A stretch of 64,000 bases of DNA from contig OZ025729.1 in the NCBI GenBank assembly GCA_964019335.1, positions 186,001 through 250,000 on the forward strand. Reading direction: 5' to 3'. Below the pieces are notes generated by a model. It was not told the origin of the DNA. It ran no database searches and saw only the letters and a list, made by a program, of their open reading frames with translations. The stretch is from Diplonema japonicum. Its lineage: Eukaryota > Protista > Euglenozoa: Diplonemea. Below are positions 690 to 28,247 of the stretch, piece after piece. A program made the translations under genes and the position numbers. How positions within the stretch are numbered: the stretch's first letter is position 1; every line of letters starts with the position of its first letter.

Positions 690-3600
690 ATGATACACCG
701 CATGCTGCTGCTGGTAGCCTGTGCAGGAGCTGTGTCAGCTATCTGCCCGACGGAGGGGCCTTCCTTTGACCGGGTTGCTGGGACACCGTATGCCTGCTCT
801 TCGTCTACGACAAGCGATGTGCACCTTTACTGGACGGTGGAGGGGGGGTCCGTTCACATGGCTCTCGCTGTTCAGGATGTGTCTGGGTGGGTGTCTCTGA
901 GCTTCCCCACGACACGGGGGACGATGGTCCCTGCGGAGGCGGTGTCCGGATACGGGACGATGGTCGGGAGGCAGCGGGTGACGGCTCGGAACCCATCCGG
1001 TGTGGCGGCGGACAACACCGTTCTCACCGACGTCAGCAACATGGAGATCTCGACCCTCACCATCGGGGGGTCCTCCTACCGTGTTCTTCGCTTCACGAGG
1101 ACTGTCGCAAGCATCCCCTCCGCCACCCTCTCCGTGAACTACGCCTACCACTCCACCTCCAACACCTTCCCTGCTGACAGGCACACCACTCGCGGCGGCT
1201 GGAAGGCCGACCTCCCTCTCGACATCCCTTGCACTCCTTCCTCGAACCCTGACTTCCAGTGCCAGATGTCTGTTGACTCGAGGGCGATGCTTCACTGGGC
1301 GGCCCTCTCCAACGGTACTGTGGATGCACAGCTTGTCGTGTCTCAGAACACTGCTGGGTGGGCGGCTGTTGGTTTCCCTTCGACTGGCTTCAACATGATC
1401 GGCTCGAAGGCTCTTGTCTCTGATGGGATGGTGTACGACTTGAACGGGAAGAACCCCTCTCTTGTTGTTCCTGCCACTGACATGGGTGCTTTTGACTCCA
1501 CCTACACAACAGTGATGTCTGGTGACCAAGTTCTTCGCTTCACCACTGTTGTTACCCCTGGATCTGAGATGAACCTTGTTGTGGCCTACCACACCACTTC
1601 TTCTGGTTTCCCTGTTGCAAGGCACGAGGAACGATTCGGTGTTGAAGTTCTCATCACATCTACTCCAACTCCTACTCCTCCACCTGCTGTTGTCACTCCA
1701 CCATCGTGCACTCCTTCCTCGAACCCTGACTTCCAGTGCCAAATGTCTGTTGACTCGAGGGCGATGCTTCACTGGGCGGCCCTCTCCAACGGCACTGTGG
1801 ATGCACAGCTTGTAGTGTCTCAGAACACTGCTGGGTGGGCGGCTGTTGGTTTCCCTTCGACTGGCTTCAACATGATCGGCTCGAAGGCTCTTGTCTCTGA
1901 TGGGATGGTGTACGACTTGAACGGGAAGAACCCCTCTCTTGTTGTTCCTGCCACTGACATGGGTGCTTTTGACTCCACCTACACAACAGTGATGTCTGGT
2001 GACCAAGTTCTTCGCTTCACCACTGTCGTTACCCCTGGATCTGAGATGAACCTTGTTGTGGCCTACCATACCACTTCTTCTGGTTTCCCTGTTGCAAGGC
2101 ACGAGGAACGATTCGGTGTTGAAGTTCTCATCACATCTACTCCAACTCCTACTCCTCCACCTGCTGTTGTCACTCCACCATCGTGCACTCCTTCCTCGAA
2201 CCCTGACTTCCAGTGCCAAATGTCTGTTGACTCGAGGGCGATGCTTCACTGGGCGGCCCTCTCCAACGGCACTGTGGATGCACAGCTTGTAGTGTCTCAG
2301 AACACTGCTGGGTGGGCGGCTGTTGGTTTCCCTTCGACTGGCTTCAACATGATCGGCTCGAAGGCTCTTGTCTCTGATGGGATGGTGTACGACTTGAACG
2401 GGAAGAACCCTTCTCTTGTTGTTCCTGCCACTGACATGGGTGCTTTTGACTCCACCTACACAACAGTGATGTCTGGTGACCAAGTTCTTCGCTTCACCAC
2501 TGTCGTTACCCCTGGATCTGAGATGAACCTTGTTGTGGCCTACCACACCACTTCTTCTGGTTTCCCTGTTGCAAGGCACGAGGAACGATTCGGTGTTGAA
2601 GTTCTTATCACATCTACTCCCATGCCAACTCCTCCACCTGTTGTTACTCCTTTGTGCACTCCTTCCTCGAACCCTGACTTCCAGTGCCAGATGGCTGTTG
2701 ACTCGAGGGCGATGCTTCACTGGGCGGCCCTCTCCAACGGTACTGTGGATGCACAGCTTGTCGTGTCTCAGAACACTGCTGGGTGGGCGGCTGTTGGTTT
2801 CCCTTCGACTGGCTTCAACATGATCGGCTCGAAGGCTCTTGTCTCTGATGGGATGGTGTACGACTTGAACGGGAAGAACCCCTCTCTTGTTGTTCCTGCC
2901 ACTGACATGGGTGCTTTTGACTCCACCTACACAACAGTGATGTCTGGTGACCAAGTTCTTCGCTTCACCACTGTCGTTACCCCTGGATCTGAGATGAACC
3001 TTGTTGTGGCCTACCATACCACTTCTTCTGGTTTCCCTGTTGCAAGGCACGAGGAACGATTCGGTGTTGAGGTTCTCATCACATCTACTCCAACTCCTAC
3101 TCCTCCACCTGTTGTTGTCACTCCACCATCGTGCACTCCTTCCTCGAACCCTGACTTCCAGTGCCAAATGTCGGTTGACTCGAGGGCGATGCTTCACTGG
3201 GCGGCCCTCTCCAACGGTACTGTGGATGCACAGCTTGTAGTTTCTCAGAACACTGCTGGGTGGGCGGCTGTTGGTTTCCCTTCGACTGGCTTCAACATGA
3301 TCGGCTCGAAGGCTCTTGTCTCTGATGGGATGGTGTACGACTTGAACGGGAAGAACCCCTCTCTTGTTGTTCCTGCCACTGACATGGGTTCCTTTGACTC
3401 CACCTACACAACAGTGATGTCTGGTGACCAAGTTCTTCGCTTCACCACTGTTGTTACCCCTGGATCTGAGATGAACCTTGTTGTGGCCTACCATACCACT
3501 TCTTCTGGTTTCCCTGTTGCAAGGCACGAGGAACGATTCGGTGTTGAAGTTCTCATCACATCTACTCCAACTCCTACTCCTCCACCTGCTGTTGTCACTC

Positions 3601-6600
3601 CACCATCGTGCACTCCTTCCTCGAACCCTGACTTCCAGTGCCAAATGTCTGTTGACTCGAGGGCGATGCTTCACTGGGCGGCCCTCTCCAACGGCACTGT
3701 GGATGCACAGCTTGTAGTGTCTCAGAACACTGCTGGGTGGGCGGCTGTTGGTTTCCCTTCGACTGGCTTCAACATGATCGGCTCGAAGGCTCTTGTCTCT
3801 GATGGGATGGTGTACGACTTGAACGGGAAGAACCCTTCTCTTGTTGTTCCTGCCACTGACATGGGTGCTTTTGACTCCACCTACACAACAGTGATGTCTG
3901 GTGACCAAGTTCTTCGCTTCACCACTGTCGTTACCCCTGGATCTGAGATGAACCTTGTTGTGGCCTACCACACCACTTCTTCTGGTTTCCCTGTTGCAAG
4001 GCACGAGGAACGATTCGGTGTTGAAGTTCTTATCACATCTACTCCCATGCCAACTCCTCCACCTGTTGTTACTCCTTTGTGCACTCCTTCCTCGAACCCT
4101 GACTTCCAGTGCCAGATGGCTGTTGACTCGAGGGCGATGCTTCACTGGGCGGCCCTCTCCAACGGTACTGTGGATGCACAGCTTGTCGTGTCTCAGAACA
4201 CTGCTGGGTGGGCGGCTGTTGGTTTCCCTTCGACTGGCTTCAACATGATCGGCTCGAAGGCTCTTGTCTCTGATGGGATGGTGTACGACTTGAACGGGAA
4301 GAACCCCTCTCTTGTTGTTCCTGCCACTGACATGGGTTCCTTTGACTCCACCTACACAACAGTGATGTCTGGTGACCAAGTTCTTCGCTTCACCACTGTC
4401 GTTACCTCTGGATCTGAGATGAACCTTGTTGTGGCCTACCACACTACTTCTTCTGGTTTCCCTGTTGCAAGGCACGAGGAACGATTCGGTGTTGAAGTTC
4501 TCATCACATCTACTCCCATGCCAACTCCTCCACCTGCTGTTGTCACTCCACCATCGTGCACTCCTTCCTCGAACCCTGACTTCCAGTGCCAGATGGCTGT
4601 TGACTCGAGGGCGATGCTTCACTGGGCGGCCCTCTCCAACGGCACTGTGGATGCACAGCTTGTCGTGTCTCAGAACACTGCTGGGTGGGCAGCTGTTGGT
4701 TTCCCTTCGACTGGCTTCAACATGATCGGTTCAAAGGCTCTTGTCTCTGATGGGATGGTGTACGATTTGAACGGGAAGAATCCCTCTCTCGTTGTTCCTG
4801 CCACTGACATGGGTTCCTTCGACTCCACCTACACAACAGTGGTGTCTGGTAATCAGGTTCTTCGCTTCACCACTGTTGTTACCCCTGGATCTGAGATGAA
4901 CCTTGTTGTGGCCTACCACACCACTTCTTCTGGTTTCCCTGTTGCAAGGCACGAGGAACGATTCGGTGTTGAAGTTCTCATCACATCTACTCCCATGCCA
5001 ACTCCTCCACCTGTTGTTGTTACTCCACCTTCATGCACTCCTTCCTCGAACCCTGACTTCCAGTGCCAGATGGCTGTTGACTCGAGGGCGATGCTTCACT
5101 GGGCGGCCCTCTCCAACGGTACTGTGGATGCACAGCTTGTCGTGTCTCAGAACACTGCTGGGTGGGCGGCTGTTGGTTTCCCTTCGACTGGCTTCAACAT
5201 GATTGGATCAAAGGCTCTTGTCTCTGATGGGATGGTGTACGACTTGAACGGGAAGAACCCTTCTCTTGTTGTTCCTGCCACTGACATGGGTGCTTTTGAC
5301 TCTACATCCAGCACAGTGGTGTCTGGTGACCAAGTTCTTCGCTTCTCGACAAATGACGGTGGGAACTCGATGCTGAACCTTGTTGTGGCCTACCACACTA
5401 CGTCTTCTGGTTTCCCTGTTGCGAGGCACGAGGAACGCTTCGGTGTTCCGATTCCCTTGACAGCAGTTCCGAGCGTACCGGTCCCTACACAAGCGACACC
5501 CGATCCGTCTGGGTGCGCCACGCCCTCTCCGCTTCCCGACTTCCAGTGCATGATGGTGATCGACGCGAAGGCAACGCTTCACTGGACAGTGGCGAACGAC
5601 ATCTTCGATGCGCAGGTGGTTGTCTCCTCGAACACTGCTGGGTGGGCGGCTGTGGGGCTTCCGTCTAATGGACTGCAGATGATCGGCTCGAAGGCCCTCG
5701 TCTCTGATGGGATGGTGTACGACCTGAACGGGAAGAGCGCCGCTCTTGTTGTTCGTGCGACGGACATGGGCTCATTTGCGACTACCTCTGCGACGGTGGT
5801 GTCTGGTGACCAGGTCCTCCGCTTCTCGACGAGCCTCGTGGGGCAATCGTCTGCTGAGGTGAGGCTTGTGGTGGCGTACCACAGGACGTCGACGGCGTTC
5901 CCTGTCTACCACGATGCTCGCTTTGGTGTGAGGGTCCCGACGGGCAGGGCTGTGACACCACCTGCGACCCCTGTCCCTTCAGCGGCTCCCAGGAACAACA
6001 ACACCCCTGTCCCGACTGGCTGCACCCCCTCGACACGGGCGGGCTACCAGTGCCAGCAGGTTGTGGATGCGAAGGCAGCACTCCACTGGAACCCCCTTGC
6101 GAACGGAACGGTGGACGCGATCCTCGTGGTGTCTGGGAACTCAGCCGGGTGGTCGGCGGTGGGGCTCCCTTCTTCAGGAACGAGCATGGTCGGGGCGAAG
6201 GCCCTCGTGTCGGACGGGAAGGTGTACGACCTGAACGGGAGGTCTGCTGGGGCTGTGGTGGCGACAACAGACAACGGGGCTTTCAACGGGGCGGTGGGGA
6301 CAGCAGCCTCCTCCTCCTTCCGCATGGCCGAGGTGGCACAGGTTTCAGGAGAACAGCTGCTCCGCTTCTCAACTGACGTCGGGGCCACGGGGAGCCTGAA
6401 CCTCATCGTGTCCTACCACGGGACGTCGGCGGCCTTCCCTGTGAACAAGCACGATGAACGCTACGGGCTTGTGGTGGCGACGAACGGGGGAGCACAGGTC
6501 ACCACCTTCGACGACAACACGGAGAAGGCGAAGACGCACGGCGGGGTGATGGTGACCGTGTGGGCGTACGTGGTCCCCTGTGCCATCCTGTTGAAGAGGT

Positions 6601-7124
6601 TCGGGACGGAACCTCTGGGGATGGTCGGGCAGTACCCTGTCGCCTTCATCATGCACGGGGTGATGATGTTGGGGAGCGCCATCACCACCACCATCTTCTT
6701 CGGGGTGGCCTTAAGCGAGTTCGATGGGAATGCCGGGCACGGACACAAGGACCTGGGGATCGCCCTCATCGTGGTCATCTGGGTACAGGTGGTTCTTGGG
6801 ATCGTGGCCCCTCCGAAGGACTCCGCACTTAGGTTCCCCTTCAAGGTCTCGCACACCCTCCTCGGTGTTGGCTCCTTCGGGATGTCCATCGGGCAGATGG
6901 TGACTGGGCTACGCAACATGGAAGACCTCTACACCGACACCATCAGGGACAACCTCTTGATCGCGATGATCGTGGGGCTGGTCTTCTTCGCAGTGGCCTT
7001 CCTTGTTCTCACTGTGGTGGCAGTTGTACTGGCTGACCCTGAGGCTGCGGAGGAGGAGACGAAGAACAACCAAGAGGAGGGAGAAACAGGTGCCCAAAGC
7101 AATGAGAACAGCCCTTATGAATAG
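690..7124 (+). CDS. Multi-DOMON (12 domains) cytochrome b561 membrane protein, copy 1 (CYBDOM/ferric-chelate reductase-like), 2144 aa
   Basis: True start is ATG 690 (MIHRMLLLVACAGAVSA signal peptide, shared with the other copies). Architecture: N-terminal DOMON, 9 near-identical 157/159-aa DOMON units (GWAAVGF...NMIGSKALV...VVAYH...ARHEERFG), 2 divergent DOMONs, then about 5 TM helices with four b561-type His (KTHGG, IMHGV, GHKDLG, VSHTLLG). Confidence 0.9.
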   Translation: MIHRMLLLVACAGAVSAICPTEGPSFDRVAGTPYACSSSTTSDVHLYWTVEGGSVHMALAVQDVSGWVSLSFPTTRGTMVPAEAVSGYGTMVGRQRVTARNPSGVAADNTVLTDVSNMEISTLTIGGSSYRVLRFTRTVASIPSATLSVNYAYHSTSNTFPADRHTTRGGWKADLPLDIPCTPSSNPDFQCQMSVDSRAMLHWAALSNGTVDAQLVVSQNTAGWAAVGFPSTGFNMIGSKALVSDGMVYDLNGKNPSLVVPATDMGAFDSTYTTVMSGDQVLRFTTVVTPGSEMNLVVAYHTTSSGFPVARHEERFGVEVLITSTPTPTPPPAVVTPPSCTPSSNPDFQCQMSVDSRAMLHWAALSNGTVDAQLVVSQNTAGWAAVGFPSTGFNMIGSKALVSDGMVYDLNGKNPSLVVPATDMGAFDSTYTTVMSGDQVLRFTTVVTPGSEMNLVVAYHTTSSGFPVARHEERFGVEVLITSTPTPTPPPAVVTPPSCTPSSNPDFQCQMSVDSRAMLHWAALSNGTVDAQLVVSQNTAGWAAVGFPSTGFNMIGSKALVSDGMVYDLNGKNPSLVVPATDMGAFDSTYTTVMSGDQVLRFTTVVTPGSEMNLVVAYHTTSSGFPVARHEERFGVEVLITSTPMPTPPPVVTPLCTPSSNPDFQCQMAVDSRAMLHWAALSNGTVDAQLVVSQNTAGWAAVGFPSTGFNMIGSKALVSDGMVYDLNGKNPSLVVPATDMGAFDSTYTTVMSGDQVLRFTTVVTPGSEMNLVVAYHTTSSGFPVARHEERFGVEVLITSTPTPTPPPVVVTPPSCTPSSNPDFQCQMSVDSRAMLHWAALSNGTVDAQLVVSQNTAGWAAVGFPSTGFNMIGSKALVSDGMVYDLNGKNPSLVVPATDMGSFDSTYTTVMSGDQVLRFTTVVTPGSEMNLVVAYHTTSSGFPVARHEERFGVEVLITSTPTPTPPPAVVTPPSCTPSSNPDFQCQMSVDSRAMLHWAALSNGTVDAQLVVSQNTAGWAAVGFPSTGFNMIGSKALVSDGMVYDLNGKNPSLVVPATDMGAFDSTYTTVMSGDQVLRFTTVVTPGSEMNLVVAYHTTSSGFPVARHEERFGVEVLITSTPMPTPPPVVTPLCTPSSNPDFQCQMAVDSRAMLHWAALSNGTVDAQLVVSQNTAGWAAVGFPSTGFNMIGSKALVSDGMVYDLNGKNPSLVVPATDMGSFDSTYTTVMSGDQVLRFTTVVTSGSEMNLVVAYHTTSSGFPVARHEERFGVEVLITSTPMPTPPPAVVTPPSCTPSSNPDFQCQMAVDSRAMLHWAALSNGTVDAQLVVSQNTAGWAAVGFPSTGFNMIGSKALVSDGMVYDLNGKNPSLVVPATDMGSFDSTYTTVVSGNQVLRFTTVVTPGSEMNLVVAYHTTSSGFPVARHEERFGVEVLITSTPMPTPPPVVVTPPSCTPSSNPDFQCQMAVDSRAMLHWAALSNGTVDAQLVVSQNTAGWAAVGFPSTGFNMIGSKALVSDGMVYDLNGKNPSLVVPATDMGAFDSTSSTVVSGDQVLRFSTNDGGNSMLNLVVAYHTTSSGFPVARHEERFGVPIPLTAVPSVPVPTQATPDPSGCATPSPLPDFQCMMVIDAKATLHWTVANDIFDAQVVVSSNTAGWAAVGLPSNGLQMIGSKALVSDGMVYDLNGKSAALVVRATDMGSFATTSATVVSGDQVLRFSTSLVGQSSAEVRLVVAYHRTSTAFPVYHDARFGVRVPTGRAVTPPATPVPSAAPRNNNTPVPTGCTPSTRAGYQCQQVVDAKAALHWNPLANGTVDAILVVSGNSAGWSAVGLPSSGTSMVGAKALVSDGKVYDLNGRSAGAVVATTDNGAFNGAVGTAASSSFRMAEVAQVSGEQLLRFSTDVGATGSLNLIVSYHGTSAAFPVNKHDERYGLVVATNGGAQVTTFDDNTEKAKTHGGVMVTVWAYVVPCAILLKRFGTEPLGMVGQYPVAFIMHGVMMLGSAITTTIFFGVALSEFDGNAGHGHKDLGIALIVVIWVQVVLGIVAPPKDSALRFPFKVSHTLLGVGSFGMSIGQMVTGLRNMEDLYTDTIRDNLLIAMIVGLVFFAVAFLVLTVVAVVLADPEAAEEETKNNQEEGETGAQSNENSPYE
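1230..5510 (+). repeat. Intragenic tandem repeat, 477/471-bp unit x9 (DOMON + Pro/Thr linker)
   Basis: Units start (TGC ACT CCT TCC TCG AAC) at 1230, 1707, 2184, 2655, 3132, 3609, 4080, 4557 and 5034. Confidence 0.95.
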
Positions 7125-8458
7125 GTGAAAAGCGGGCATCTAGCAGCTTCGTTTTGTTTTTATTTAGATTCTTTCCCTCCCTTATTTCTTTTTTCTTGAC
7201 AAAAAGCTTTCTCCAGTTATTTTCAGGGGTACCGCAATATTCTCAGGATATGTCATTTTATTGCGCGATCTCTCCCGCATGAGGTGGCTAAAGACGCCTA
7301 GAGAACGTAGGTCATCTGGATGCAGCACAGAGCCTTCTATAAAATAAGGTATCTTCCAGCTTTCTTTACATCTTATTCTTTTTTTTAAATTTATGCTGTG
7401 GTAACAAAACTTTGAAAGAAAATGAAAAGAAGAAAGAAAAAAAAAAGTTAAAAGTGAACGAACTAGATTTAAAAAAAAAAATATATATATATATATAATT
7501 TATAAAGGAATCGCTATTTAATGCTCCTAGGTTGGGTGTGTTTATAGATTAGAGTTCTTTAAATGCTCAAAGAATTCCGGTTTGCTCATAAAAAGCTTTT
7601 TTTTTTTCTTTCAATTTTCTTTGCTGCCCACGCCCTCTTCTTTTTTGTTTTTTTTTTCTTTTGTTTTTGTTATTCTTTTTTTTTTTTTTTGCATTCAACC
7701 TCCGGTGTGCAGTTCTTCAACATTTCATAAAAGAATACACTGCCCTCCCTACTGTCTTTTTCTTTTCATTTTTGTTTTTTTACAATCTTCAATTATCAGC
7801 CAATGCCCTTTCTATTTGGCTATTTTTGAATGATTTTACCCCACTTTTTTTTTTTTTTACCCCCGTGCACCGCCTAGTACTTGGTGTGGTTATAAAGTTG
7901 CAGATTCTTAAGAAAAAAATAAGAATAAAAGGTGGAAAGGAAATAAAATTAAAAAAAAAAAAAAAAAAAAAAAGAAAATGGGAAAGTACCCACTTCATGC
8001 TTATGTCAGGTACTATTCCCTAGCACCTACTTTTTTTTTTTCTTTTTTTTTTCTTTCTCTCTCTGCAAACATACCCCCTCCCCCTTTCATTTTTTTTTTG
8101 ACATTCTTATTTTCTCTTTTTTTCCGGCTTGCACAAACAATCAGCCGACTCTCTTTTTCCGGTTTTATAGGATCATTATGACTCATCTTTTACGACACCG
8201 TTTTTCTACTCCACACTTCTGTTCTGCAGGCTTCTATCAAGTAGTTCGTAGTAATTTTAAAAATAAGCGTAAAACATATCTCTCGAGTCCGCTGCCGTAC
8301 TTTTAAGACAACCTTATTTATTCGTCTCATCGGCTTATTCTTTCTCTCTCTTTTGTTCCCTTTCACACAAAACATTGTTTTCTTTCTTTGTTCCTTAAAG
8401 TCGCACAACTACAGTTCAATCATTCTCATTTCAGCTTATAAAAACTCTACAAGAAGTC

Positions 8459-14277: not shown

Positions 14278-14340
14278 CTTCTTCTTCTTCTTCTTCTTCT
14301 TCTTCTTCTTCTTCTTCTTCTTCTTCTTCTTCTTCTTCTT
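14278..14340. repeat. (CTT)n microsatellite, about 21 units
   Basis: Perfect CTT run in the spacer between copies 2 and 3. Confidence 0.95.
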
Positions 14341-18400: not shown

Positions 18401-21400
18401 GGGCGATGCTTCACTGGGCGGCCCTCTCCAACGGCACTGTGGATGCACAGCTTGTAGTGTCTCAGAACACTGCTGGGTGGGCGGCTGTTGGTTTCCCTTC
18501 GACTGGCTTCAACATGATCGGCTCGAAGGCTCTTGTCTCTGATGGGATGGTGTACGACTTGAACGGGAAGAACCCTTCTCTTGTTGTTCCTGCCACTGAC
18601 ATGGGTGCTTTTGACTCCACCTACACAACAGTGATGTCTGGTGACCAAGTTCTTCGCTTCACCACTGTCGTTACCCCTGGATCTGAGATGAACCTTGTTG
18701 TGGCCTACCATACCACTTCTTCTGGTTTCCCTGTTGCAAGGCACGAGGAACGATTCGGTGTTGAAGTTCTCATCACATCTACTCCAACTCCTACTCCTCC
18801 ACCTGCTGTTGTCACTCCGCCATCGTGCACTCCTTCCTCGAACCCTGACTTCCAGTGCCAAATGTCTGTTGACTCGAGGGCGATGCTTCACTGGGCGGCC
18901 CTCTCGAACGGTACTGTGGATGCACAGCTTGTCGTGTCTCAGAACACTGCTGGGTGGGCGGCTGTTGGTTTCCCTTCGACTGGCTTCAACATGATTGGAT
19001 CAAAGGCTCTTGTCTCTGATGGGATGGTGTACGATTTGAACGGGAAGAACCCTTCTCTTGTTGTTCCTGCCACTGACATGGGTTCCTTCGACTCCACCTA
19101 CACAACAGTGATGTCTGGTGACCAAGTTCTTCGCTTCACCACTGCTGTTACCCCTGGATCTGAGATGAACCTTGTTGTGGCCTACCACACCACTTCTTCT
19201 GGTTTCCCTGTTGCAAGGCACGAGGAACGATTCGGTGTTGAGGTTCTCATCACATCTACTCCAACTCCAACTCCTCCACCTGCTGTTGTCACTCCACCAT
19301 CGTGCACTCCTTCCTCGAACCCTGATTTCCAGTGCCAGATGTCTGTTGACTCGAGGGCGATGCTTCACTGGGCGGCCCTCTCCAATGGCACTGTGGATGC
19401 ACAGCTTGTCGTGTCTCAGAACACTGCTGGGTGGGCGGCTGTTGGTTTCCCTTCGACTGGCTTCAACATGATCGGCTCGAAGGCTCTTGTCTCTGATGGG
19501 ATGGTGTACGACTTGAACGGGAAGAACCCCTCTCTTGTTGTTCCTGCCACTGACATGGGTTCCTTTGACTCCACCTACACAACAGTGATGTCTGGTGACC
19601 AAGTTCTTCGCTTCACCACTGTCGTTACCTCTGGATCTGAGATGAACCTTGTTGTGGCCTACCACACTACTTCTTCTGGTTTCCCTGTTGCAAGGCACGA
19701 GGAACGATTCGGTGTTGAAGTTCTCATCACATCTACTCCCATGCCAACTCCTCCACCTGCTGTTGTCACTCCACCATCGTGCACTCCTTCCTCGAACCCT
19801 GACTTCCAGTGCCAGATGGCTGTTGACTCGAGGGCGATGCTTCACTGGGCGGCCCTCTCCAACGGCACTGTGGATGCACAGCTTGTCGTGTCTCAGAACA
19901 CTGCTGGGTGGGCAGCTGTTGGTTTCCCTTCGACTGGCTTCAACATGATCGGTTCAAAGGCTCTTGTCTCTGATGGGATGGTGTACGATTTGAACGGGAA
20001 GAATCCCTCTCTCGTTGTTCCTGCCACTGACATGGGTTCCTTCGACTCCACCTACACAACAGTGGTGTCTGGTAATCAGGTTCTTCGCTTCACCACTGTT
20101 GTTACCCCTGGATCTGAGATGAACCTTGTTGTGGCCTACCACACCACTTCTTCTGGTTTCCCTGTTGCAAGGCACGAGGAACGATTCGGTGTTGAAGTTC
20201 TCATCACATCTACTCCCATGCCAACTCCTCCACCTGTTGTTGTTACTCCACCTTCATGCACTCCTTCCTCGAACCCTGACTTCCAGTGCCAGATGGCTGT
20301 TGACTCGAGGGCGATGCTTCACTGGGCGGCCCTCTCCAACGGTACTGTGGATGCACAGCTTGTCGTGTCTCAGAACACTGCTGGGTGGGCGGCTGTTGGT
20401 TTCCCTTCGACTGGCTTCAACATGATTGGATCAAAGGCTCTTGTCTCTGATGGGATGGTGTACGACTTGAACGGGAAGAACCCTTCTCTTGTTGTTCCTG
20501 CCACTGACATGGGTGCTTTTGACTCTACATCCAGCACAGTGGTGTCTGGTGACCAAGTTCTTCGCTTCTCGACAAATGACGGTGGGAACTCGATGCTGAA
20601 CCTTGTTGTGGCCTACCACACTACGTCTTCTGGTTTCCCTGTTGCGAGGCACGAGGAACGCTTCGGTGTTCCGATTCCCTTGACAGCAGTTCCGAGCGTA
20701 CCGGTCCCTACACAAGCGACACCCGATCCGTCTGGGTGCGCCACGCCCTCTCCGCTTCCCGACTTCCAGTGCATGATGGTGATCGACGCGAAGGCAACGC
20801 TTCACTGGACAGTGGCGAACGACATCTTCGATGCGCAGGTGGTTGTCTCCTCGAACACTGCTGGGTGGGCGGCTGTGGGGCTTCCGTCTAATGGACTGCA
20901 GATGATCGGCTCGAAGGCCCTCGTCTCTGATGGGATGGTGTACGACCTGAACGGGAAGAGCGCCGCTCTTGTTGTTCGTGCGACGGACATGGGCTCATTT
21001 GCGACTACCTCTGCGACGGTGGTGTCTGGTGACCAGGTCCTCCGCTTCTCGACGAGCCTCGTGGGGCAATCGTCTGCTGAGGTGAGGCTTGTGGTGGCGT
21101 ACCACAGGACGTCGACGGCGTTCCCTGTCTACCACGATGCTCGCTTTGGTGTGAGGGTCCCGACGGGCAGGGCTGTGACACCACCTGCGACCCCTGTCCC
21201 TTCAGCGGCTCCCAGGAACAACAACACCCCTGTCCCGACTGGCTGCACCCCCTCGACACGGGCGGGCTACCAGTGCCAGCAGGTTGTGGATGCGAAGGCA
21301 GCACTCCACTGGAACCCCCTTGCGAACGGAACGGTGGACGCGATCCTCGTGGTGTCTGGGAACTCAGCCGGGTGGTCGGCGGTGGGGCTCCCTTCTTCAG

Positions 21401-22338
21401 GAACGAGCATGGTCGGGGCGAAGGCCCTCGTGTCGGACGGGAAGGTGTACGACCTGAACGGGAGGTCTGCTGGGGCTGTGGTGGCGACAACAGACAACGG
21501 GGCTTTCAACGGGGCGGTGGGGACAGCAGCCTCCTCCTCCTTCCGCATGGCCGAGGTGGCACAGGTTTCAGGAGAACAGCTGCTCCGCTTCTCAACTGAC
21601 GTCGGGGCCACGGGGAGCCTGAACCTCATCGTGTCCTACCACGGGACGTCGGCGGCCTTCCCTGTGAACAAGCACGATGAACGCTACGGGCTTGTGGTGG
21701 CGACGAACGGGGGAGCACAGGTCACCACCTTCGACGACAACACGGAGAAGGCGAAGACGCACGGCGGGGTGATGGTGACCGTGTGGGCGTACGTGGTCCC
21801 CTGTGCCATCCTGTTGAAGAGGTTCGGGACGGAACCTCTGGGGATGGTCGGGCAGTACCCTGTCGCCTTCATCATGCACGGGGTGCTGATGTTGGGGAGC
21901 GCCATCACCACCACCATCTTCTTCGGGGTGGCCTTAAGCGAGTTCGATGGGAATGCCGGGCACGGACACAAGGACCTGGGGATCGCCCTCGTCGTGGTCA
22001 TCTGGGTACAGGTGGTTCTTGGGATCGTGGCCCCTCCGAAGGACTCCGCACTGAGGTTCCCGTTTGTGATCTCGCACACCCTCCTCGGTGTTGGCTCCTT
22101 CGGGATGTCCATCGGGCAGATGGTGGCTGGGCTACGCAACATGGAAGACCTCTACACCGACACCATCAGGGACAACCTCTTGATCGCGATGATCGTGGGG
22201 CTGGTCTTCTTCGCAGTGGCCTTCCTTGTTCTCACTGTGGTGATGGTTGTACTGGCGAAGCCTGTGGAAATTGTTCCTGTAAACAATTCTGCAGATGAAG
22301 GTGGCAACACCGGTGAAAGGAACAGGCCCTATGAGTAG
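15424..22338 (+). CDS. Multi-DOMON (13 domains) cytochrome b561 membrane protein, copy 3, 2304 aa
   Basis: Same architecture with 10 repeat units; a few substitutions in the b561 domain and a different cytoplasmic tail (AKPVEIVPVNNSADEGGNTGERNRPYE). Confidence 0.9.
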   Translation: MIHRMLLLVACAGAVSAICPTEGPSFDRVAGTPYACSSSTTSDVHLYWTVEGGSVHMALAVQDVSGWVSLSFPTTRGTMVPAEAVSGYGTMVGRQRVTARNPSGVAADNTVLTDVSNMEISTLTIGGSSYRVLRFTRTVASIPSATLSVNYAYHSTSNTFPADRHTTRGGWKADLPLDIPCTPSSNPDFQCQMSVDSRAMLHWAALSNGTVDAQLVVSQNTAGWAAVGFPSTGFNMIGSKALVSDGMVYDLNGKNPSLVVPATDMGAFDSTYTTVMSGDQVLRFTTVVTPGSEMNLVVAYHTTSSGFPVARHEERFGVEVLITSTPTPTPPPAVVTPPSCTPSSNPDFQCQMSVDSRAMLHWAALSNGTVDAQLVVSQNTAGWAAVGFPSTGFNMIGSKALVSDGMVYDLNGKNPSLVVPATDMGSFDSTYTTVMSGDQVLRFTTVVTSGSEMNLVVAYHTTSSGFPVARHEERFGVEVLITSTPMPTPPPAVVTPPSCTPSSNPDFQCQMAVDSRAMLHWAALSNGTVDAQLVVSQNTAGWAAVGFPSTGFNMIGSKALVSDGMVYDLNGKNPSLVVPATDMGAFDSTYTTVMSGDQVLRFTTVVTPGSEMNLVVAYHTTSSGFPVARHEERFGVEVLITSTPTPTPPPAVVTPPSCTPSSNPDFQCQMSVDSRAMLHWAALSNGTVDAQLVVSQNTAGWAAVGFPSTGFNMIGSKALVSDGMVYDLNGKNPSLVVPATDMGAFDSTYTTVMSGDQVLRFTTVVTPGSEMNLVVAYHTTSSGFPVARHEERFGVEVLITSTPMPTPPPAVVTPPSCTPSSNPDFQCQMSVNSRAMLHWAALSNGTVDAQLVVSQNTAGWAAVGFPSTGFNMIGSKALVSDGMVYDLNGKNPSLVVPATDMGAFDSTYTTVMSGDQVLRFTTVVTPGTEMNLVVAYHTTSSGFPVARHEERFGVEVLITSTPTPTPPPAVVTPPSCTPSSNPDFQCQMSVDSRAMLHWAALSNGTVDAQLVVSQNTAGWAAVGFPSTGFNMIGSKALVSDGMVYDLNGKNPSLVVPATDMGAFDSTYTTVMSGDQVLRFTTVVTPGSEMNLVVAYHTTSSGFPVARHEERFGVEVLITSTPTPTPPPAVVTPPSCTPSSNPDFQCQMSVDSRAMLHWAALSNGTVDAQLVVSQNTAGWAAVGFPSTGFNMIGSKALVSDGMVYDLNGKNPSLVVPATDMGSFDSTYTTVMSGDQVLRFTTAVTPGSEMNLVVAYHTTSSGFPVARHEERFGVEVLITSTPTPTPPPAVVTPPSCTPSSNPDFQCQMSVDSRAMLHWAALSNGTVDAQLVVSQNTAGWAAVGFPSTGFNMIGSKALVSDGMVYDLNGKNPSLVVPATDMGSFDSTYTTVMSGDQVLRFTTVVTSGSEMNLVVAYHTTSSGFPVARHEERFGVEVLITSTPMPTPPPAVVTPPSCTPSSNPDFQCQMAVDSRAMLHWAALSNGTVDAQLVVSQNTAGWAAVGFPSTGFNMIGSKALVSDGMVYDLNGKNPSLVVPATDMGSFDSTYTTVVSGNQVLRFTTVVTPGSEMNLVVAYHTTSSGFPVARHEERFGVEVLITSTPMPTPPPVVVTPPSCTPSSNPDFQCQMAVDSRAMLHWAALSNGTVDAQLVVSQNTAGWAAVGFPSTGFNMIGSKALVSDGMVYDLNGKNPSLVVPATDMGAFDSTSSTVVSGDQVLRFSTNDGGNSMLNLVVAYHTTSSGFPVARHEERFGVPIPLTAVPSVPVPTQATPDPSGCATPSPLPDFQCMMVIDAKATLHWTVANDIFDAQVVVSSNTAGWAAVGLPSNGLQMIGSKALVSDGMVYDLNGKSAALVVRATDMGSFATTSATVVSGDQVLRFSTSLVGQSSAEVRLVVAYHRTSTAFPVYHDARFGVRVPTGRAVTPPATPVPSAAPRNNNTPVPTGCTPSTRAGYQCQQVVDAKAALHWNPLANGTVDAILVVSGNSAGWSAVGLPSSGTSMVGAKALVSDGKVYDLNGRSAGAVVATTDNGAFNGAVGTAASSSFRMAEVAQVSGEQLLRFSTDVGATGSLNLIVSYHGTSAAFPVNKHDERYGLVVATNGGAQVTTFDDNTEKAKTHGGVMVTVWAYVVPCAILLKRFGTEPLGMVGQYPVAFIMHGVLMLGSAITTTIFFGVALSEFDGNAGHGHKDLGIALVVVIWVQVVLGIVAPPKDSALRFPFVISHTLLGVGSFGMSIGQMVAGLRNMEDLYTDTIRDNLLIAMIVGLVFFAVAFLVLTVVMVVLAKPVEIVPVNNSADEGGNTGERNRPYE
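15964..20733 (+). repeat. Intragenic tandem repeat, 477-bp unit x10
   Basis: Units every 477 bp from 15964 to 20257. Confidence 0.95.
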
Positions 22339-22879
22339 AGAGTAGGGAACTACTGGTTAAAGTAGGTTAGTCAGAATGTTATAGTTTTTTTTTATTTTTT
22401 TATTTTCTGCGCTGTTGCGTGCCACTTCGTTCCTATCATAGTGGATTTTATTAGTGGATCTTATTGGAGACGGGATGTGTAACTGGGTGACGGGTGAGGC
22501 AATATAACACTACCAAAGCAGAAAAAGGACAAACATCTCAAAACTGGTAATATTATTCGCATCTCCTTGCCGTAACGAAAGATGCACACCATGTCACTCC
22601 TAATGTATTGAAGTATTCTCTATTTTTCTTTTTCTTTTTTGTTTAAAAAGGCCTTCTTGCTGGCCTGTTTTTTATTTTTTTTTTCTTCCCCCCGAGTTGT
22701 ACTTTTTTTCCCCTATTTCTTTCTTTTTTTTTTTTTGCCCAAGTTGTATCCATTGTGAGATTTTTTTTTTTTTTTTTTAAACTCTTTCACACACGCGTGC
22801 TGTATTCTGATGCCTTTGCGCTTTTCTACCTCAGATGCAATTCGCTTTTTTTTTCTTTTTTTTAAATGTGTAGTGAAGA

Positions 22880-22917
<38 letters not shown>

Positions 22918-23708
22918 GGATTTTCTCCCCTTCTTGGGCATATTATAAACAGACAACCTCAGCGAATCTGAAGAAAAGTATTTTTAATTAGTACGAAGAA
23001 GATGATTTTTTAATGTAGGAGTGTGCCAACACATTGGGATTGCCATATTCTTTTTTTGCTTTAAAGGAAGGAATGTCCACAGGTAAGGCAGCCCATAACT
23101 TAATAAAGATGTTAAATCTTTTTTTTTTTCTCTTGAGAATGATGTCGCCCACTGGAAGCTTTTTTATTTATTTTTTTCATTTCATTTTTTTTTTTAATTC
23201 TTCTTTTTTGCGATCATATAGTTACAATATAACAGACCAGTGCGAAGAAAAAAAGCGTACTTGGTCTGACCTTAGAAACCTTACTGTTGTTGCTGGACTG
23301 CCGGCAGTGTGGATCTACTTGTTATTTTTGTAAATATCAAAGAATAGTATTAAAAAAAAAAAGAAAAAAAATAATTCAGGCGTGTGCTTCACATTATTAA
23401 TACTATAGCGCAAACAGGTGCAGCTTGCCTTTTCTTTCCACTCTCCTTTTTTTTCTCCTCCGGGCACACATACTCTTCTAGCTATCTATATTCTACAGCA
23501 CGTTACTCTTTTCACCAATTTCCATCTTTTCTTCGTACTCATTCTTAATCTCGACTCCCTTTTCGCTTGTCTCGCCAGCTTTACCTTTCTCTCTCTTTCA
23601 TTTCTTCCCTCCCGCCAAACCTTTGTTTCTCTTCCTTCTATAGCCCTGCACCTATCTCACCTCACATTACAGATTCACATACTCAACAACAACAAGAAGC
23701 GAGAAACC

Positions 23709-26700
23709 ATGATACACCGCATGCTGCTGCTGGTAGCCTGTGCAGGAGCTGTGTCAGCTATCTGCCCGACGGAGGGGCCTTCCTTTGACCGGGTTGCTGG
23801 GACACCGTATGCCTGCTCTTCGTCTACGACAAGCGATGTGCACCTTTACTGGACGGTGGAGGGGGGGTCCGTTCACATGGCTCTCGCTGTTCAGGATGTG
23901 TCTGGGTGGGTGTCTCTGAGCTTCCCCACGACACGGGGGACGATGGTCCCTGCGGAGGCGGTGTCCGGATACGGGACGATGGTCGGGAGGCAGCGGGTGA
24001 CGGCTCGGAACCCATCCGGTGTGGCGGCGGACAACACCGTTCTCACCGACGTCAGCAACATGGAGATCTCGACCCTCACCATCGGGGGGTCCTCCTACCG
24101 TGTTCTTCGCTTCACGAGGACTGTCGCAAGCATCCCCTCCGCCACCCTCTCCGTGAACTACGCCTACCACTCCACCTCCAACACCTTCCCTGCTGACAGG
24201 CACACCACTCGCGGCGGCTGGAAGGCCGACCTCCCTCTCGACATCCCTTGCACTCCTTCCTCGAACCCTGACTTTCAGTGCCAGATGTCTGTTGACTCGA
24301 GGGCGATGCTTCACTGGGCGGCCCTCTCCAACGGTACTGTGGATGCACAGCTTGTCGTGTCTCAGAACACTGCTGGGTGGGCGGCTGTTGGTTTCCCTTC
24401 GACTGGCTTCAACATGATTGGATCAAAGGCTCTTGTCTCTGATGGGATGGTGTACGACTTGAACGGGAAGAACCCTTCTCTTGTTGTTCCTGCCACTGAC
24501 ATGGGTGCTTTTGACTCCACCTACACAACAGTGATGTCTGGTGACCAAGTTCTTCGCTTCACCACTGTTGTTACCCCTGGATCTGAGATGAACCTTGTTG
24601 TGGCCTACCACACCACTTCTTCTGGTTTCCCTGTTGCAAGGCACGAGGAACGATTCGGTGTTGAAGTTCTCATCACATCTACTCCAACTCCTACTCCTCC
24701 ACCTGCTGTTGTCACTCCACCATCGTGCACTCCTTCCTCGAACCCTGACTTCCAGTGCCAAATGTCTGTTGACTCGAGGGCGATGCTTCACTGGGCGGCC
24801 CTCTCGAACGGTACTGTGGATGCACAGCTTGTCGTGTCTCAGAACACTGCTGGGTGGGCGGCTGTTGGTTTCCCTTCGACTGGCTTCAACATGATTGGAT
24901 CAAAGGCTCTTGTCTCTGATGGGATGGTGTACGATTTGAACGGGAAGAACCCTTCTCTTGTTGTTCCTGCCACTGACATGGGTTCCTTCGACTCCACCTA
25001 CACAACAGTGATGTCTGGTGACCAAGTTCTTCGCTTCACCACTGCTGTTACCCCTGGATCTGAGATGAACCTTGTTGTGGCCTACCACACCACTTCTTCT
25101 GGTTTCCCTGTTGCAAGGCACGAGGAACGATTCGGTGTTGAGGTTCTCATCACATCTACTCCAACTCCAACTCCTCCACCTGCTGTTGTCACTCCACCAT
25201 CGTGCACTCCTTCCTCGAACCCTGATTTCCAGTGCCAGATGTCTGTTGACTCGAGGGCGATGCTTCACTGGGCGGCCCTCTCCAATGGCACTGTGGATGC
25301 ACAGCTTGTCGTGTCTCAGAACACTGCTGGGTGGGCGGCTGTTGGTTTCCCTTCGACTGGCTTCAACATGATCGGCTCGAAGGCTCTTGTCTCTGATGGG
25401 ATGGTGTACGACTTGAACGGGAAGAACCCCTCTCTTGTTGTTCCTGCCACTGACATGGGTTCCTTTGACTCCACCTACACAACAGTGATGTCTGGTGACC
25501 AAGTTCTTCGCTTCACCACTGTCGTTACCTCTGGATCTGAGATGAACCTTGTTGTGGCCTACCACACTACTTCTTCTGGTTTCCCTGTTGCAAGGCACGA
25601 GGAACGATTCGGTGTTGAAGTTCTCATCACATCTACTCCCATGCCAACTCCTCCACCTGCTGTTGTCACTCCACCATCGTGCACTCCTTCCTCGAACCCT
25701 GACTTCCAGTGCCAGATGGCTGTTGACTCGAGGGCGATGCTTCACTGGGCGGCCCTCTCCAACGGCACTGTGGATGCACAGCTTGTCGTGTCTCAGAACA
25801 CTGCTGGGTGGGCAGCTGTTGGTTTCCCTTCGACTGGCTTCAACATGATCGGTTCAAAGGCTCTTGTCTCTGATGGGATGGTGTACGATTTGAACGGGAA
25901 GAATCCCTCTCTCGTTGTTCCTGCCACTGACATGGGTTCCTTCGACTCCACCTACACAACAGTGGTGTCTGGTAATCAGGTTCTTCGCTTCACCACTGTT
26001 GTTACCCCTGGATCTGAGATGAACCTTGTTGTGGCCTACCACACCACTTCTTCTGGTTTCCCTGTTGCAAGGCACGAGGAACGATTCGGTGTTGAAGTTC
26101 TCATCACATCTACTCCCATGCCAACTCCTCCACCTGTTGTTGTTACTCCACCTTCATGCACTCCTTCCTCGAACCCTGACTTCCAGTGCCAGATGGCTGT
26201 TGACTCGAGGGCGATGCTTCACTGGGCGGCCCTCTCCAACGGTACTGTGGATGCACAGCTTGTCGTGTCTCAGAACACTGCTGGGTGGGCGGCTGTTGGT
26301 TTCCCTTCGACTGGCTTCAACATGATTGGATCAAAGGCTCTTGTCTCTGATGGGATGGTGTACGACTTGAACGGGAAGAACCCTTCTCTTGTTGTTCCTG
26401 CCACTGACATGGGTGCTTTTGACTCTACATCCAGCACAGTGGTGTCTGGTGACCAAGTTCTTCGCTTCTCGACAAATGACGGTGGGAACTCGATGCTGAA
26501 CCTTGTTGTGGCCTACCACACTACGTCTTCTGGTTTCCCTGTTGCGAGGCACGAGGAACGCTTCGGTGTTCCGATTCCCTTGACAGCAGTTCCGAGCGTA
26601 CCGGTCCCTACACAAGCGACACCCGATCCGTCTGGGTGCGCCACGCCCTCTCCGCTTCCCGACTTCCAGTGCATGATGGTGATCGACGCGAAGGCAACGC

Positions 26701-28247
26701 TTCACTGGACAGTGGCGAACGACATCTTCGATGCGCAGGTGGTTGTCTCCTCGAACACTGCTGGGTGGGCGGCTGTGGGGCTTCCGTCTAATGGACTGCA
26801 GATGATCGGCTCGAAGGCCCTCGTCTCTGATGGGATGGTGTACGACCTGAACGGGAAGAGCGCCGCTCTTGTTGTTCGTGCGACGGACATGGGCTCATTT
26901 GCGACTACCTCTGCGACGGTGGTGTCTGGTGACCAGGTCCTCCGCTTCTCGACGAGCCTCGTGGGGCAATCGTCTGCTGAGGTGAGGCTTGTGGTGGCGT
27001 ACCACAGGACGTCGACGGCGTTCCCTGTCTACCACGATGCTCGCTTTGGTGTGAGGGTCCCGACGGGCAGGGCTGTGACACCACCTGCGACCCCTGTCCC
27101 TTCAGCGGCTCCCAGGAACAACAACACCCCTGTCCCGACTGGCTGCACCCCCTCGACACGGGCGGGCTACCAGTGCCAGCAGGTTGTGGATGCGAAGGCA
27201 GCACTCCACTGGAACCCCCTTGCGAACGGAACGGTGGACGCGATCCTCGTGGTGTCTGGGAACTCAGCCGGGTGGTCGGCGGTGGGGCTCCCTTCTTCAG
27301 GAACGAGCATGGTCGGGGCGAAGGCCCTCGTGTCGGACGGGAAGGTGTACGACCTGAACGGGAGGTCTGCTGGGGCTGTGGTGGCGACAACAGACAACGG
27401 GGCTTTCAACGGGGCGGTGGGGACAGCAGCCTCCTCCTCCTTCCGCATGGCCGAGGTGGCACAGGTTTCAGGAGAACAGCTGCTCCGCTTCTCAACTGAC
27501 GTCGGGGCCACGGGGAGCCTGAACCTCATCGTGTCCTACCACGGGACGTCGGCGGCCTTCCCTGTGAACAAGCACGATGAACGCTACGGGCTTGTGGTGG
27601 CGACGAACGGGGGAGCACAGGTCACCACCTTCGACGACAACACGGAGAAGGCGAAGACGCACGGCGGGGTGATGGTGACCGTGTGGGCGTACGTGGTCCC
27701 CTGTGCCATCCTGTTGAAGAGGTTCGGGACGGAACCTCTGGGGATGGTCGGGCAGTACCCTGTCGCCTTCATCATGCACGGGGTGATGATGTTGGGGAGC
27801 GCCATCACCACCACCATCTTCTTCGGGGTGGCCTTAAGCGAGTTCGATGGGAATGCCGGGCACGGACACAAGGACCTGGGGATCGCCCTCATCGTGGTCA
27901 TCTGGGTACAGGTGGTTCTTGGGATCGTGGCCCCTCCGAAGGACTCCGCACTTAGGTTCCCCTTCAAGGTCTCGCACACCCTCCTCGGTGTTGGCTCCTT
28001 CGGGATGTCCATCGGGCAGATGGTGACTGGGCTACGCAACATGGAAGACCTCTACACCGACACCATCAGGGACAACCTCTTGATCGCGATGATCGTGGGG
28101 CTGGTCTTCTTCGCAGTGGCCTTCCTTGTTCTCACTGTGGTGATGGTTGTACTGGCTGACCCTGAGGCTGCGGAGGAGGAGACGAAGAACAACCAAGAGG
28201 AGGGAGAAACAGGTGCCCAAAGCAATGAGAACAGCCCTTATGAGTAG
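23709..28247 (+). CDS. Multi-DOMON (8 domains) cytochrome b561 membrane protein, copy 4, 1512 aa
   Basis: True ATG at 23709 (the ORF-track extension from 23418 is polypyrimidine spacer); 5 repeat units. Confidence 0.9.
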   Translation: MIHRMLLLVACAGAVSAICPTEGPSFDRVAGTPYACSSSTTSDVHLYWTVEGGSVHMALAVQDVSGWVSLSFPTTRGTMVPAEAVSGYGTMVGRQRVTARNPSGVAADNTVLTDVSNMEISTLTIGGSSYRVLRFTRTVASIPSATLSVNYAYHSTSNTFPADRHTTRGGWKADLPLDIPCTPSSNPDFQCQMSVDSRAMLHWAALSNGTVDAQLVVSQNTAGWAAVGFPSTGFNMIGSKALVSDGMVYDLNGKNPSLVVPATDMGAFDSTYTTVMSGDQVLRFTTVVTPGSEMNLVVAYHTTSSGFPVARHEERFGVEVLITSTPTPTPPPAVVTPPSCTPSSNPDFQCQMSVDSRAMLHWAALSNGTVDAQLVVSQNTAGWAAVGFPSTGFNMIGSKALVSDGMVYDLNGKNPSLVVPATDMGSFDSTYTTVMSGDQVLRFTTAVTPGSEMNLVVAYHTTSSGFPVARHEERFGVEVLITSTPTPTPPPAVVTPPSCTPSSNPDFQCQMSVDSRAMLHWAALSNGTVDAQLVVSQNTAGWAAVGFPSTGFNMIGSKALVSDGMVYDLNGKNPSLVVPATDMGSFDSTYTTVMSGDQVLRFTTVVTSGSEMNLVVAYHTTSSGFPVARHEERFGVEVLITSTPMPTPPPAVVTPPSCTPSSNPDFQCQMAVDSRAMLHWAALSNGTVDAQLVVSQNTAGWAAVGFPSTGFNMIGSKALVSDGMVYDLNGKNPSLVVPATDMGSFDSTYTTVVSGNQVLRFTTVVTPGSEMNLVVAYHTTSSGFPVARHEERFGVEVLITSTPMPTPPPVVVTPPSCTPSSNPDFQCQMAVDSRAMLHWAALSNGTVDAQLVVSQNTAGWAAVGFPSTGFNMIGSKALVSDGMVYDLNGKNPSLVVPATDMGAFDSTSSTVVSGDQVLRFSTNDGGNSMLNLVVAYHTTSSGFPVARHEERFGVPIPLTAVPSVPVPTQATPDPSGCATPSPLPDFQCMMVIDAKATLHWTVANDIFDAQVVVSSNTAGWAAVGLPSNGLQMIGSKALVSDGMVYDLNGKSAALVVRATDMGSFATTSATVVSGDQVLRFSTSLVGQSSAEVRLVVAYHRTSTAFPVYHDARFGVRVPTGRAVTPPATPVPSAAPRNNNTPVPTGCTPSTRAGYQCQQVVDAKAALHWNPLANGTVDAILVVSGNSAGWSAVGLPSSGTSMVGAKALVSDGKVYDLNGRSAGAVVATTDNGAFNGAVGTAASSSFRMAEVAQVSGEQLLRFSTDVGATGSLNLIVSYHGTSAAFPVNKHDERYGLVVATNGGAQVTTFDDNTEKAKTHGGVMVTVWAYVVPCAILLKRFGTEPLGMVGQYPVAFIMHGVMMLGSAITTTIFFGVALSEFDGNAGHGHKDLGIALIVVIWVQVVLGIVAPPKDSALRFPFKVSHTLLGVGSFGMSIGQMVTGLRNMEDLYTDTIRDNLLIAMIVGLVFFAVAFLVLTVVMVVLADPEAAEEETKNNQEEGETGAQSNENSPYE
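24249..26633 (+). repeat. Intragenic tandem repeat, 477-bp unit x5
   Basis: Units start at 24249, 24726, 25203, 25680 and 26157. Confidence 0.95.

Follow-up and report, generated by a model that had tools for sequence, protein, structure and literature searches.

A 64,000-nucleotide stretch of contig OZ025729.1 from the diplonemid Diplonema japonicum (assembly GCA_964019335.1; contig positions 186,001 to 250,000; hereafter the window) carries at positions 690-28247 four intact, intronless open reading frames (ORFs) on the plus strand, called g1 to g4 (Table 1). Each encodes a string of DOMON domains followed by a cytochrome b561. We read the products, with a probability of about 0.6, as CYBDOM-type transmembrane reductases of the plasma membrane (or an endomembrane, such as that of a food vacuole or endosome) that bear a flexible, multi-haem DOMON ectodomain, with haem occupancy, topology, electron donor, haem-to-haem hopping, and acceptor as we infer them from sequences and models. 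The CYBDOM architecture itself is well supported by fold, profile, and ligand pattern.

Four tandem genes encode DOMON strings joined to a cytochrome b561

The four proteins share one order: a typical hydrophobic signal peptide at the N terminus, a head DOMON (D1), a series of near-identical core units of 157 to 160 amino acids (aa), two base DOMONs, a five-helix membrane domain of the b561 type C-terminal to the last DOMON, and an acidic tail. The initial annotation had described four genes with a signal peptide, a Pro/Thr-linked DOMON string, and a b561 domain with four His, and all of these elements were seen in each of the four ORFs. The DOMON numbers it gave (12, 9, 13, and 8 in g1 to g4) were reproduced by motif counts and by hidden Markov model (HMM) counts, both made on the assembled sequence. 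The total is 42 units, 30 of which are core units (9, 6, 10, and 5 copies, respectively). Tandem Repeats Finder reported 477-nucleotide (nt) arrays of 8.9, 5.9, 9.9, and 4.9 copies with 95% matches.

Core units are 89 to 100% identical to one another. Identity to a core unit is 61 to 62% for the penultimate DOMON, 56% for the last DOMON, and 32% for D1. The linkers between core units have 19 residues, including 7 Pro and 4 or 5 Thr. N-x-S/T sequons are found about once per DOMON unit; the b561 core has none, and the tail of g3 has one. This distribution is a sign of an exoplasmic DOMON string.

Profile searches and structural models identify the domains

Checking the domain names with Pfam gave a divided result. 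The whole protein scored 74.6 bits for DOMON (PF03351; cut-off, 32.7), whereas single DOMON units and the b561 part stayed under their cut-offs. The membrane part also gave 19 bits for DUF2427, which is under the cut-off of that family. Because Pfam is weak for the single parts, the domain names rest on the summed Pfam score, profile searches, and fold comparison.

A word-based homologue search, limited by its length window and by divergence, returned one protein for a 367-aa piece and none for full-length g4. A profile of the unit types, searched against 1.84 billion representative proteins, returned 169 relatives. The last DOMON and the membrane domain were aligned in 34 sequences (33 relatives), down to 18% identity, and the b561 profile from this alignment matched Arabidopsis b561 (4o6y; E = 5.5e-8) and human Dcytb (5zle; E = 2.1e-7). 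In the profile alignment, all four b561 His of the D. japonicum proteins fall on the haem-ligand His of the solved b561 structures. The nearest language-model clusters are plant and nematode cytochrome b561/DOMON proteins, and the representatives of look-alike clusters in the atlas have at most 894 aa. Sequence searches against solved structures returned no match for the whole protein; for the DOMON profile (A3) they returned a chance lectin match only and no match to cellobiose dehydrogenase (CDH), and Met65 and His163 of CDH were therefore not aligned residue by residue to the DOMON Met and His.

Structural models gave the same domain identities. An AlphaFold (AF2) model of the last DOMON plus b561 had a predicted local distance difference test score (pLDDT) of 88.5 and a predicted template modelling score (pTM) of 0.78. 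It has five long helices and a tail helix, and hydrophobic windows are present in the sequence. The model matched 4o6y with a Z score of 14.4 (2.9 Å over 160 residues) and Dcytb with a Z score of 14.1; its DOMON part matched the DOMON of dopamine beta-hydroxylase (DBH; Z = 12.3), the cytochrome b of pyranose dehydrogenase (Z = 10.6), and the CDH cytochrome (Z of about 10). When two core units were modelled together (pLDDT, 90.7), the matches were the DBH DOMON (Z = 12.8) and the CDH cytochrome (Z = 10.7), and other matches, an immunoglobulin-like background, were at most 7.4. The signal peptide and the likeness to Arabidopsis CRR suggest that the N terminus of the DOMON-b561 proteins would lie outside and the C terminus in the cytosol. 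On the same grounds, the b561 His pairs of g2 are predicted to be 1477 with 1546 on the outer side and 1516 with 1582 on the cytoplasmic side.

Candidate haem ligands are conserved across divergent DOMON types

The Met motifs (TMVPA, NMIGS, QMIGS, and SMVGA), the His motifs (DRHTT, ARHEE, VYHDA, and NKHDE), and the N-terminal Cys pair noted in the initial annotation are present in every unit (42/42), and none of g1 to g4 lacks any of the four b561 His. Met and His are the haem b ligands of CDH; they are kept in CYBDOMs and are absent from sugar-binding DOMONs and from DBH (PMC10691727). Arabidopsis CRR, an ascorbate-dependent ferric reductase with its DOMON outside the cell, has Met89 and His180 plus the four His (PMC10784552). 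The Met-to-His spacing is 88 residues in the last DOMON, compared with 91 in CRR.

In the 34 homologues, DOMON Met56 and His144 and b561 His173, His242, and His278 are invariant, and His212 is nearly so. The DOMON Met and His are invariant in one-domain as well as two-domain alignments. Among 154 related DOMONs from 98 proteins, the Met is found in 92% and the His in 61%, or in 82% where the position is aligned. A second locally invariant His, His121 (in AYH), was ruled out as a haem ligand; relatives have Gly, Trp, or Asn at this position.

The core units are under purifying selection: the ratio of nonsynonymous to synonymous substitution rates (dN/dS) is 0.09 (mean dN, 0.0087; mean dS, 0.095), and 29 codons vary synonymously only, against 10 variable residues. 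Independent support for the ligands, at the level of sequence comparison, is fourfold: their presence in three divergent unit types, in the paralogues, and in the wider family, and the purifying selection on the units. The earlier estimate of 10 to 15 b haems per chain is sound as an arithmetic of potential sites (unit count plus b561 His), and each protein probably carries that many.

Array lengths probably differ by gain and loss of whole units

The coding parts of the genes are 98 to 99.6% identical over 4 to 5.8 kb, and with the near-identity of the units, this raises the question of whether assembly of a complex repeat gave wrong unit counts (8, 9, 12, and 13) or a wrong count of genes. 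Transcripts assembled from short reads do break or collapse in the repeats. P0003, a D. japonicum transcript assembled with Trinity, is 100% identical over aa 1-181 and then loses frame inside the repeats; the 5′ part of the genes is transcribed. The intronless tandem layout had raised the possibility of a kinetoplastid origin, which this transcript identity overturned. P0001, which matches a three-DOMON paralogue described below, is without one of the units of that paralogue, probably through assembly collapse. P0009, a fragment from the same Trinity gene as P0003, is 81% identical to the junction of the third-last and second-last DOMONs in all four genes (Table 1). It is absent from the primary assembly and seems to represent a fifth gene or a divergent allele outside it.

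We nevertheless consider assembly error very improbable. The genome was assembled with hifiasm from 102x PacBio HiFi data at a quality value (QV) of 59.4, with 7.93 Gb in 840,000 reads (PMC13598402), which gives about 9.4 kb per read. The genes, of 4.5 to 6.9 kb, lie between mutually unrelated spacers of 1.3 to 1.9 kb (short low-complexity matches aside; places 22837-22874 left out). Since the spacers are unrelated and the genes are shorter than an average read, single reads can anchor both gene ends. Gene pairs differ at 17 to 88 positions over 3.9 to 5.8 kb. Aligned from the 3′ end, the arrays keep register and nest in the order g4, g2, g1, g3 from innermost to outermost, which places the change in unit number beside the head domain. 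Two of the nine core units of g1 are 157-aa units private to that gene, and together with the nesting they look like the result of real unit gain and loss, not collapse.

The spacers at 7125-8458, 13475-15423, and 22339-23708 cannot be aligned although the coding parts are near-identical. Identity between genes starts 83 nt before the ATG (shown for g3 and g4) and stops about 30 to 170 nt after the stop codon. This pattern suggests gene conversion limited to the transcribed or coding part.

Paralogues and relatives also carry DOMON arrays of variable length

The genome contains 66 DOMON matches, including the 42 in the window. It also has 16 b561-like loci, several of which end ORFs of 2400 to 2800 aa, and together with 27 loci with a Ferric_reduct domain, they make up an unusually large set of transmembrane electron carriers. 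A pair of paralogues 110 kb downstream (C82 in Table 1) has 6 and 3 DOMONs on nearly identical b561 domains. In this pair the head-type DOMON is amplified (fivefold and twofold, in copies 94 to 100% identical) on a 10-residue linker with Met and His kept, whereas g1 to g4 amplify the core type. The amplified unit is 67 to 71% identical to D1 of g2. Two independent amplifications of different DOMON types argue that length as such is selected or at least tolerated.

Multi-DOMON proteins of variable length are thus found elsewhere in this genome and also in other diplonemids and are not limited to g1 to g4. Shorter multi-DOMON relatives belong to the same family by profile, and in them, too, unit number varies between tandem paralogues. 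Among the 150 best relatives, the largest number of DOMONs with a b561 is six (P0013 and P0016). Four neighbouring paralogues of another organism, on one ENA contig of 73,837 bp (P0002, P0008, P0160, and P0162), have 5, 6, 7, and 5 DOMONs; the seven-DOMON protein and two of its neighbours have no detectable b561, and their gene models may be truncated or they may be multi-DOMON proteins of the AIR12 kind. The relatives with a named source are from Flectonema, Lacrimia, Rhynchopus, Diplonema ambulator, and the green alga Tetraselmis. These counts cover this DOMON subfamily and are, for other organisms, lower bounds, because short-read transcriptomes collapse repeats.

P0016, a six-DOMON b561 protein from an ENA contig of 529,575 bp, has Ser in place of Met in five of its six units and keeps the His. 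Its Ser units point either to different ligation or to haem loss in repeats.

The D. japonicum proteins were originally singled out as having more DOMONs than known CYBDOMs, and the survey agrees: two DOMONs are found in 19 of 888 insect CYBDOMs and more than two in none (PMC10691727). By sequence counts, g1 to g4 have the largest DOMON arrays among the relatives found here. Our literature search found no paper dealing with DOMON proteins of diplonemids, with b561 proteins that carry tandem DOMON arrays, or with extracellular electron transfer through DOMONs in eukaryotes.

Comparison with known electron transfer proteins

The closest known architecture is that of the CYBDOMs (Arabidopsis CRR/HYP1, mammalian SDR2/FRRS1, and Drosophila CG8399), which likewise have a signal peptide, a Met/His DOMON, and a five-helix b561 with four His. 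The spacing of the b561 His is 39/30/36 in the D. japonicum genes and 36/33/36 in CRR, in the same order. CYBDOMs have one DOMON, or rarely two in insects (PMC10691727), compared with 8 to 13 in g1 to g4. The D. japonicum proteins also differ in having a fixed order of three DOMON types (head, amplified relay, and base) joined by Pro/Thr linkers, in lacking a reeler domain, and in having single units that fall under the Pfam cut-offs.

The cytochrome domains of CDH (AA8; 1D7B and 4QI3) and pyranose dehydrogenase (6JT6) have the same beta-sandwich as the DOMONs of g1 to g4, with Z scores of about 10 to 10.7. In the CDH type, as in these DOMONs, the Met lies in a mid-domain loop and the His near the C terminus. 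The CDH cytochrome domain is mobile and exchanges electrons on contact; carried on a flexible linker, it hands electrons to outside partners such as lytic polysaccharide monooxygenases (LPMOs), and we liken g1 to g4 to this arrangement. Sequence identity is 12 to 13%. The D. japonicum proteins have many serial copies and would receive their electrons from a b561 in the membrane instead of a fused flavin or PQQ dehydrogenase; a Pfam scan of the full-length proteins found no GMC or FAD domain, which sets them apart from CDH-type fusions.

With the bacterial multihaem c-type cytochromes (MtrCAB and OmcS), g1 to g4 share only the idea of many haems per polypeptide leading outward from the membrane. 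The folds are unrelated. None of the four proteins contains a CxxCH motif, so they are not multihaem c-type cytochromes, and each globular domain would instead hold a putative noncovalent b haem. The haems of MtrCAB and OmcS are stacked a few angstroms apart, whereas the domains of g1 to g4 are on linkers predicted to be flexible.

A tethered relay is favored over a rigid wire

These differences bear on the original proposal of a nanowire analogous to the bacterial multihaem conduits. The many potential haems per chain uphold part of it. A rigid and closely packed wire is unlikely because the linkers are rich in Pro and Thr and, modelled at low confidence, are predicted to be flexible. In the models, the last DOMON with b561 reaches a pTM of 0.78, compared with 0.63 for two core units. 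The best reading of these models is a tethered haem relay or brush, over a rigid nanowire. The two b561 haems and the haem of the proximal DOMON would form a fixed three-haem gate, followed by a flexible, iso-potential string of cytochromes.

Several findings weigh against reductases with a multi-haem ectodomain. Single units alone score 15 to 17 bits in Pfam against the DOMON cut-off of 32.7, and the b561 part scores 16 bits against the Cytochrom_B561 cut-off of 23. The best structural match of the DOMONs is DBH, which binds no haem, and fold by itself therefore does not establish haem binding. Since the core units are about 96% identical, Met and His in 30 of them are not independent evidence. 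The pLDDT of the inter-DOMON linker is 67 to 69 and the two-unit pTM is 0.63, with each domain above 90 in pLDDT. Near-identical units should be isopotential, which leaves no driving force along the chain. Finally, the 27 Ferric_reduct loci of the genome are membrane domains of the FRE/NOX type, and a genome search did not find an FTR1 permease; this gene content does not single out iron uptake as the role of g1 to g4.

Some of these findings could also describe a stalk or coat, in which only the membrane-proximal DOMON, and perhaps also the head, would be redox active. The core units would then be a glycosylated spacer, or an adhesive or ligand-binding coat, that sets the height of the head, and length variation would serve reach or surface variation, not conduction. 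The Pro/Thr linkers and the single sequon per unit look mucin-like, the model leaves the relative orientation of the units free, the DBH-type DOMON that ranks first by fold is a non-haem domain, and amplification affects the middle type alone, the head and both base units being of distinct types. P0016 shows that repeats can lose a ligand. We consider a stalk or coat unlikely, however: both ligands are kept in 42/42 units, the dN/dS of 0.09 applies over the whole domain and not just the scaffold, multi-DOMON relatives other than P0016 keep the Met in nearly all units, and a distant head domain could not be reduced without a relay.

The same sites could also serve a haem store, a haem scavenger, or an electron buffer. 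The DOMONs would bind haem so as to keep or take up haem or iron (from prey, for example) or to buffer redox charge, with no serial outward transfer. D. japonicum presumably lives as a predator or scavenger, and 10 to 15 potential sites would give each polypeptide a high haem-binding capacity. This alternative seems quite improbable to us, as the known Met/His DOMON cytochromes (CDH, AIR12, and CYBDOM) bind their haem firmly, in the role of a redox cofactor (PMC10784552), and the arrays of g1 to g4 are always fused to an intact b561 gate with four His, which a store would not need.

Proposed route of electrons and candidate acceptors

For a transmembrane reductase with a multi-haem ectodomain, we propose the following route. 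A cytosolic one-electron donor, most likely ascorbate, would reduce the inner bis-His haem of b561, and the electron would move to the outer bis-His haem. From there, it would pass to the Met/His b haem of the membrane-proximal DOMON, which is packed on the b561 core in the model. Haem-to-haem self-exchange could then spread the electron over 7 to 12 further near-identical DOMON cytochromes, carried on flexible Pro/Thr linkers that are probably O-glycosylated, in a string capped by the distinct head DOMON. As a tethered bucket brigade or redox brush, the ectodomain would have a reach of tens of nanometres from the membrane and a capacity of up to 10 to 15 electrons. Array length would be set by gain and loss of whole units beside the head domain, and gene conversion would keep the coding sequences alike.

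The donor is probably ascorbate. An ALO-domain gene (aldonolactone oxidase type; last step of ascorbate synthesis) is present in the genome, and the family consensus has a conserved Lys-Arg after transmembrane helix 1 and an Arg before transmembrane helix 4, basic residues on cytosolic loops.

Likely acceptors would be Fe(III) chelates or colloids, O2, or secreted AA10 copper monooxygenases; of these, iron reduction has a precedent. AA10 LPMOs (PF03067) have 52 matches genome-wide, of which about 50 are full length and many are in tandem arrays, a very large secreted copper monooxygenase family for a protist. The two AA10 genes that were read (Table 1) encode a signal peptide followed by an N-terminal His (HGYV..SPPSR), as well as two CBM1-like Cys modules on Pro-rich linkers; from its place in the sequence, the His-Gly-Tyr after the signal peptide is the copper His-brace position. 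We found no paper on the D. japonicum AA10 family. A genome search for AA9 gave no match, nor did its control, which makes that result uninformative. LPMOs depend on reductant supplied from outside, a part played in fungi by the DOMON-type cytochrome of CDH. The abundance of AA10 genes is context for a possible acceptor role and not evidence of a link.

A more specific scheme is possible, if doubtful. In it, an ascorbate-fed b561 gate of diplonemids would export electrons into a flexible poly-cytochrome of up to 13 b-haem DOMONs, its length tuned by unit gain and loss, that primes AA10 LPMOs and/or reduces particulate Fe(III) at a distance. Such a protein would give eukaryotes a protein-tethered kind of extracellular electron transfer and would do at the membrane what the CDH-LPMO system does in fungi.

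Coordinates, C termini, and neighboring genes

Table 1. Features of the DOMON-b561 genes and of related loci. Positions are those of the window unless a locus is named; ORF coordinates are counted from the first ATG of each ORF.
Feature	Position	Strand	Description
g1	690-7124	+	2144 aa; signal peptide, 12 DOMON units (head D1, 9 core, 2 divergent base), b561
g1 b561 core	about 6513-7043	+	followed by an acidic tail ending in PYE
g2	8459-13474	+	1671 aa; layout as g1; 9 DOMON units (6 core)
g2 signal peptide and head DOMON D1	8459-8998	+	Met in TMVPA, His in DRHTT
g2 core array	8999-11863	+	six 477/480-nt units, each a DOMON (Met56 and His132 in unit numbering) with a 19-residue Pro/Thr linker
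g2 penultimate DOMON	11864-12370	+	QMIGS and VYHDA; 61-62% identical to core; 28-residue linker
g2 last DOMON	12371-12862	+	Met aa 1360, His aa 1448; packed on the b561 core in the model
g2 cytochrome b561 core	12863-13393	+	five helices; His aa 1477, 1516, 1546, 1582
g3	15424-22338	+	2304 aa; layout as g1; 13 DOMON units (10 core); tail unlike g1, g2, and g4
g4	23709-28247	+	1512 aa; layout as g1; 8 DOMON units (5 core)
Third-last/second-last DOMON junction	about 5286-5684, 11636-12034, 20509-20907, 26409-26807	+	region compared with P0009
Paralogue pair	L001:1208-4903, L002:1225-3408	+	C82:299-310 kb
AA10 genes read	L005:497-1636, L006:379-1431	-	signal peptide, then N-terminal His

All four proteins end in Pro-Tyr-Glu (7113-7121, 13463-13471, 22327-22335, and 28236-28244) despite the different tail of g3, and this shared C terminus may be a conserved sorting or binding signal. 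A distant paralogue on contig C34 ends in Gln-Pro-Tyr.

Downstream of g4, two near-identical ABCA-type transporters (1748 and 1733 aa; 29651-34897 and 41604-46805) flank a receptor-type adenylate/guanylate cyclase (35607-38885) whose ectodomain is of the bacterial solute-binding-protein type. These neighbors offer no hint of DOMON-b561 function. Small ORFs at 48158-48979 and 49164-50213 have matches to a BspA-type leucine-rich repeat and a PARP catalytic domain.

Implications

In the eukaryotic transmembrane reductases known to us, the acceptors lie within a few nanometres of the membrane. If the reading of g1 to g4 as reductases with a multi-haem ectodomain is true, they would be the first eukaryotic proteins built around b haems for moving or storing many electrons well beyond the cell. 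Should the domains bind no haem, what remains is a surface glycoprotein with an unusual expansion of repeats. The genes also form a natural length series of 8, 9, 12, and 13 DOMONs, with 3 and 6 in the paralogues, in which the scaling of electron transfer with the number of tethered cytochromes could be followed. Diplonemids rank with the most abundant and most diverse heterotrophs of the sea, and a surface redox system that served them in acquiring iron or in attacking chitin or cellulose oxidatively would matter for iron and carbon cycling in the ocean.

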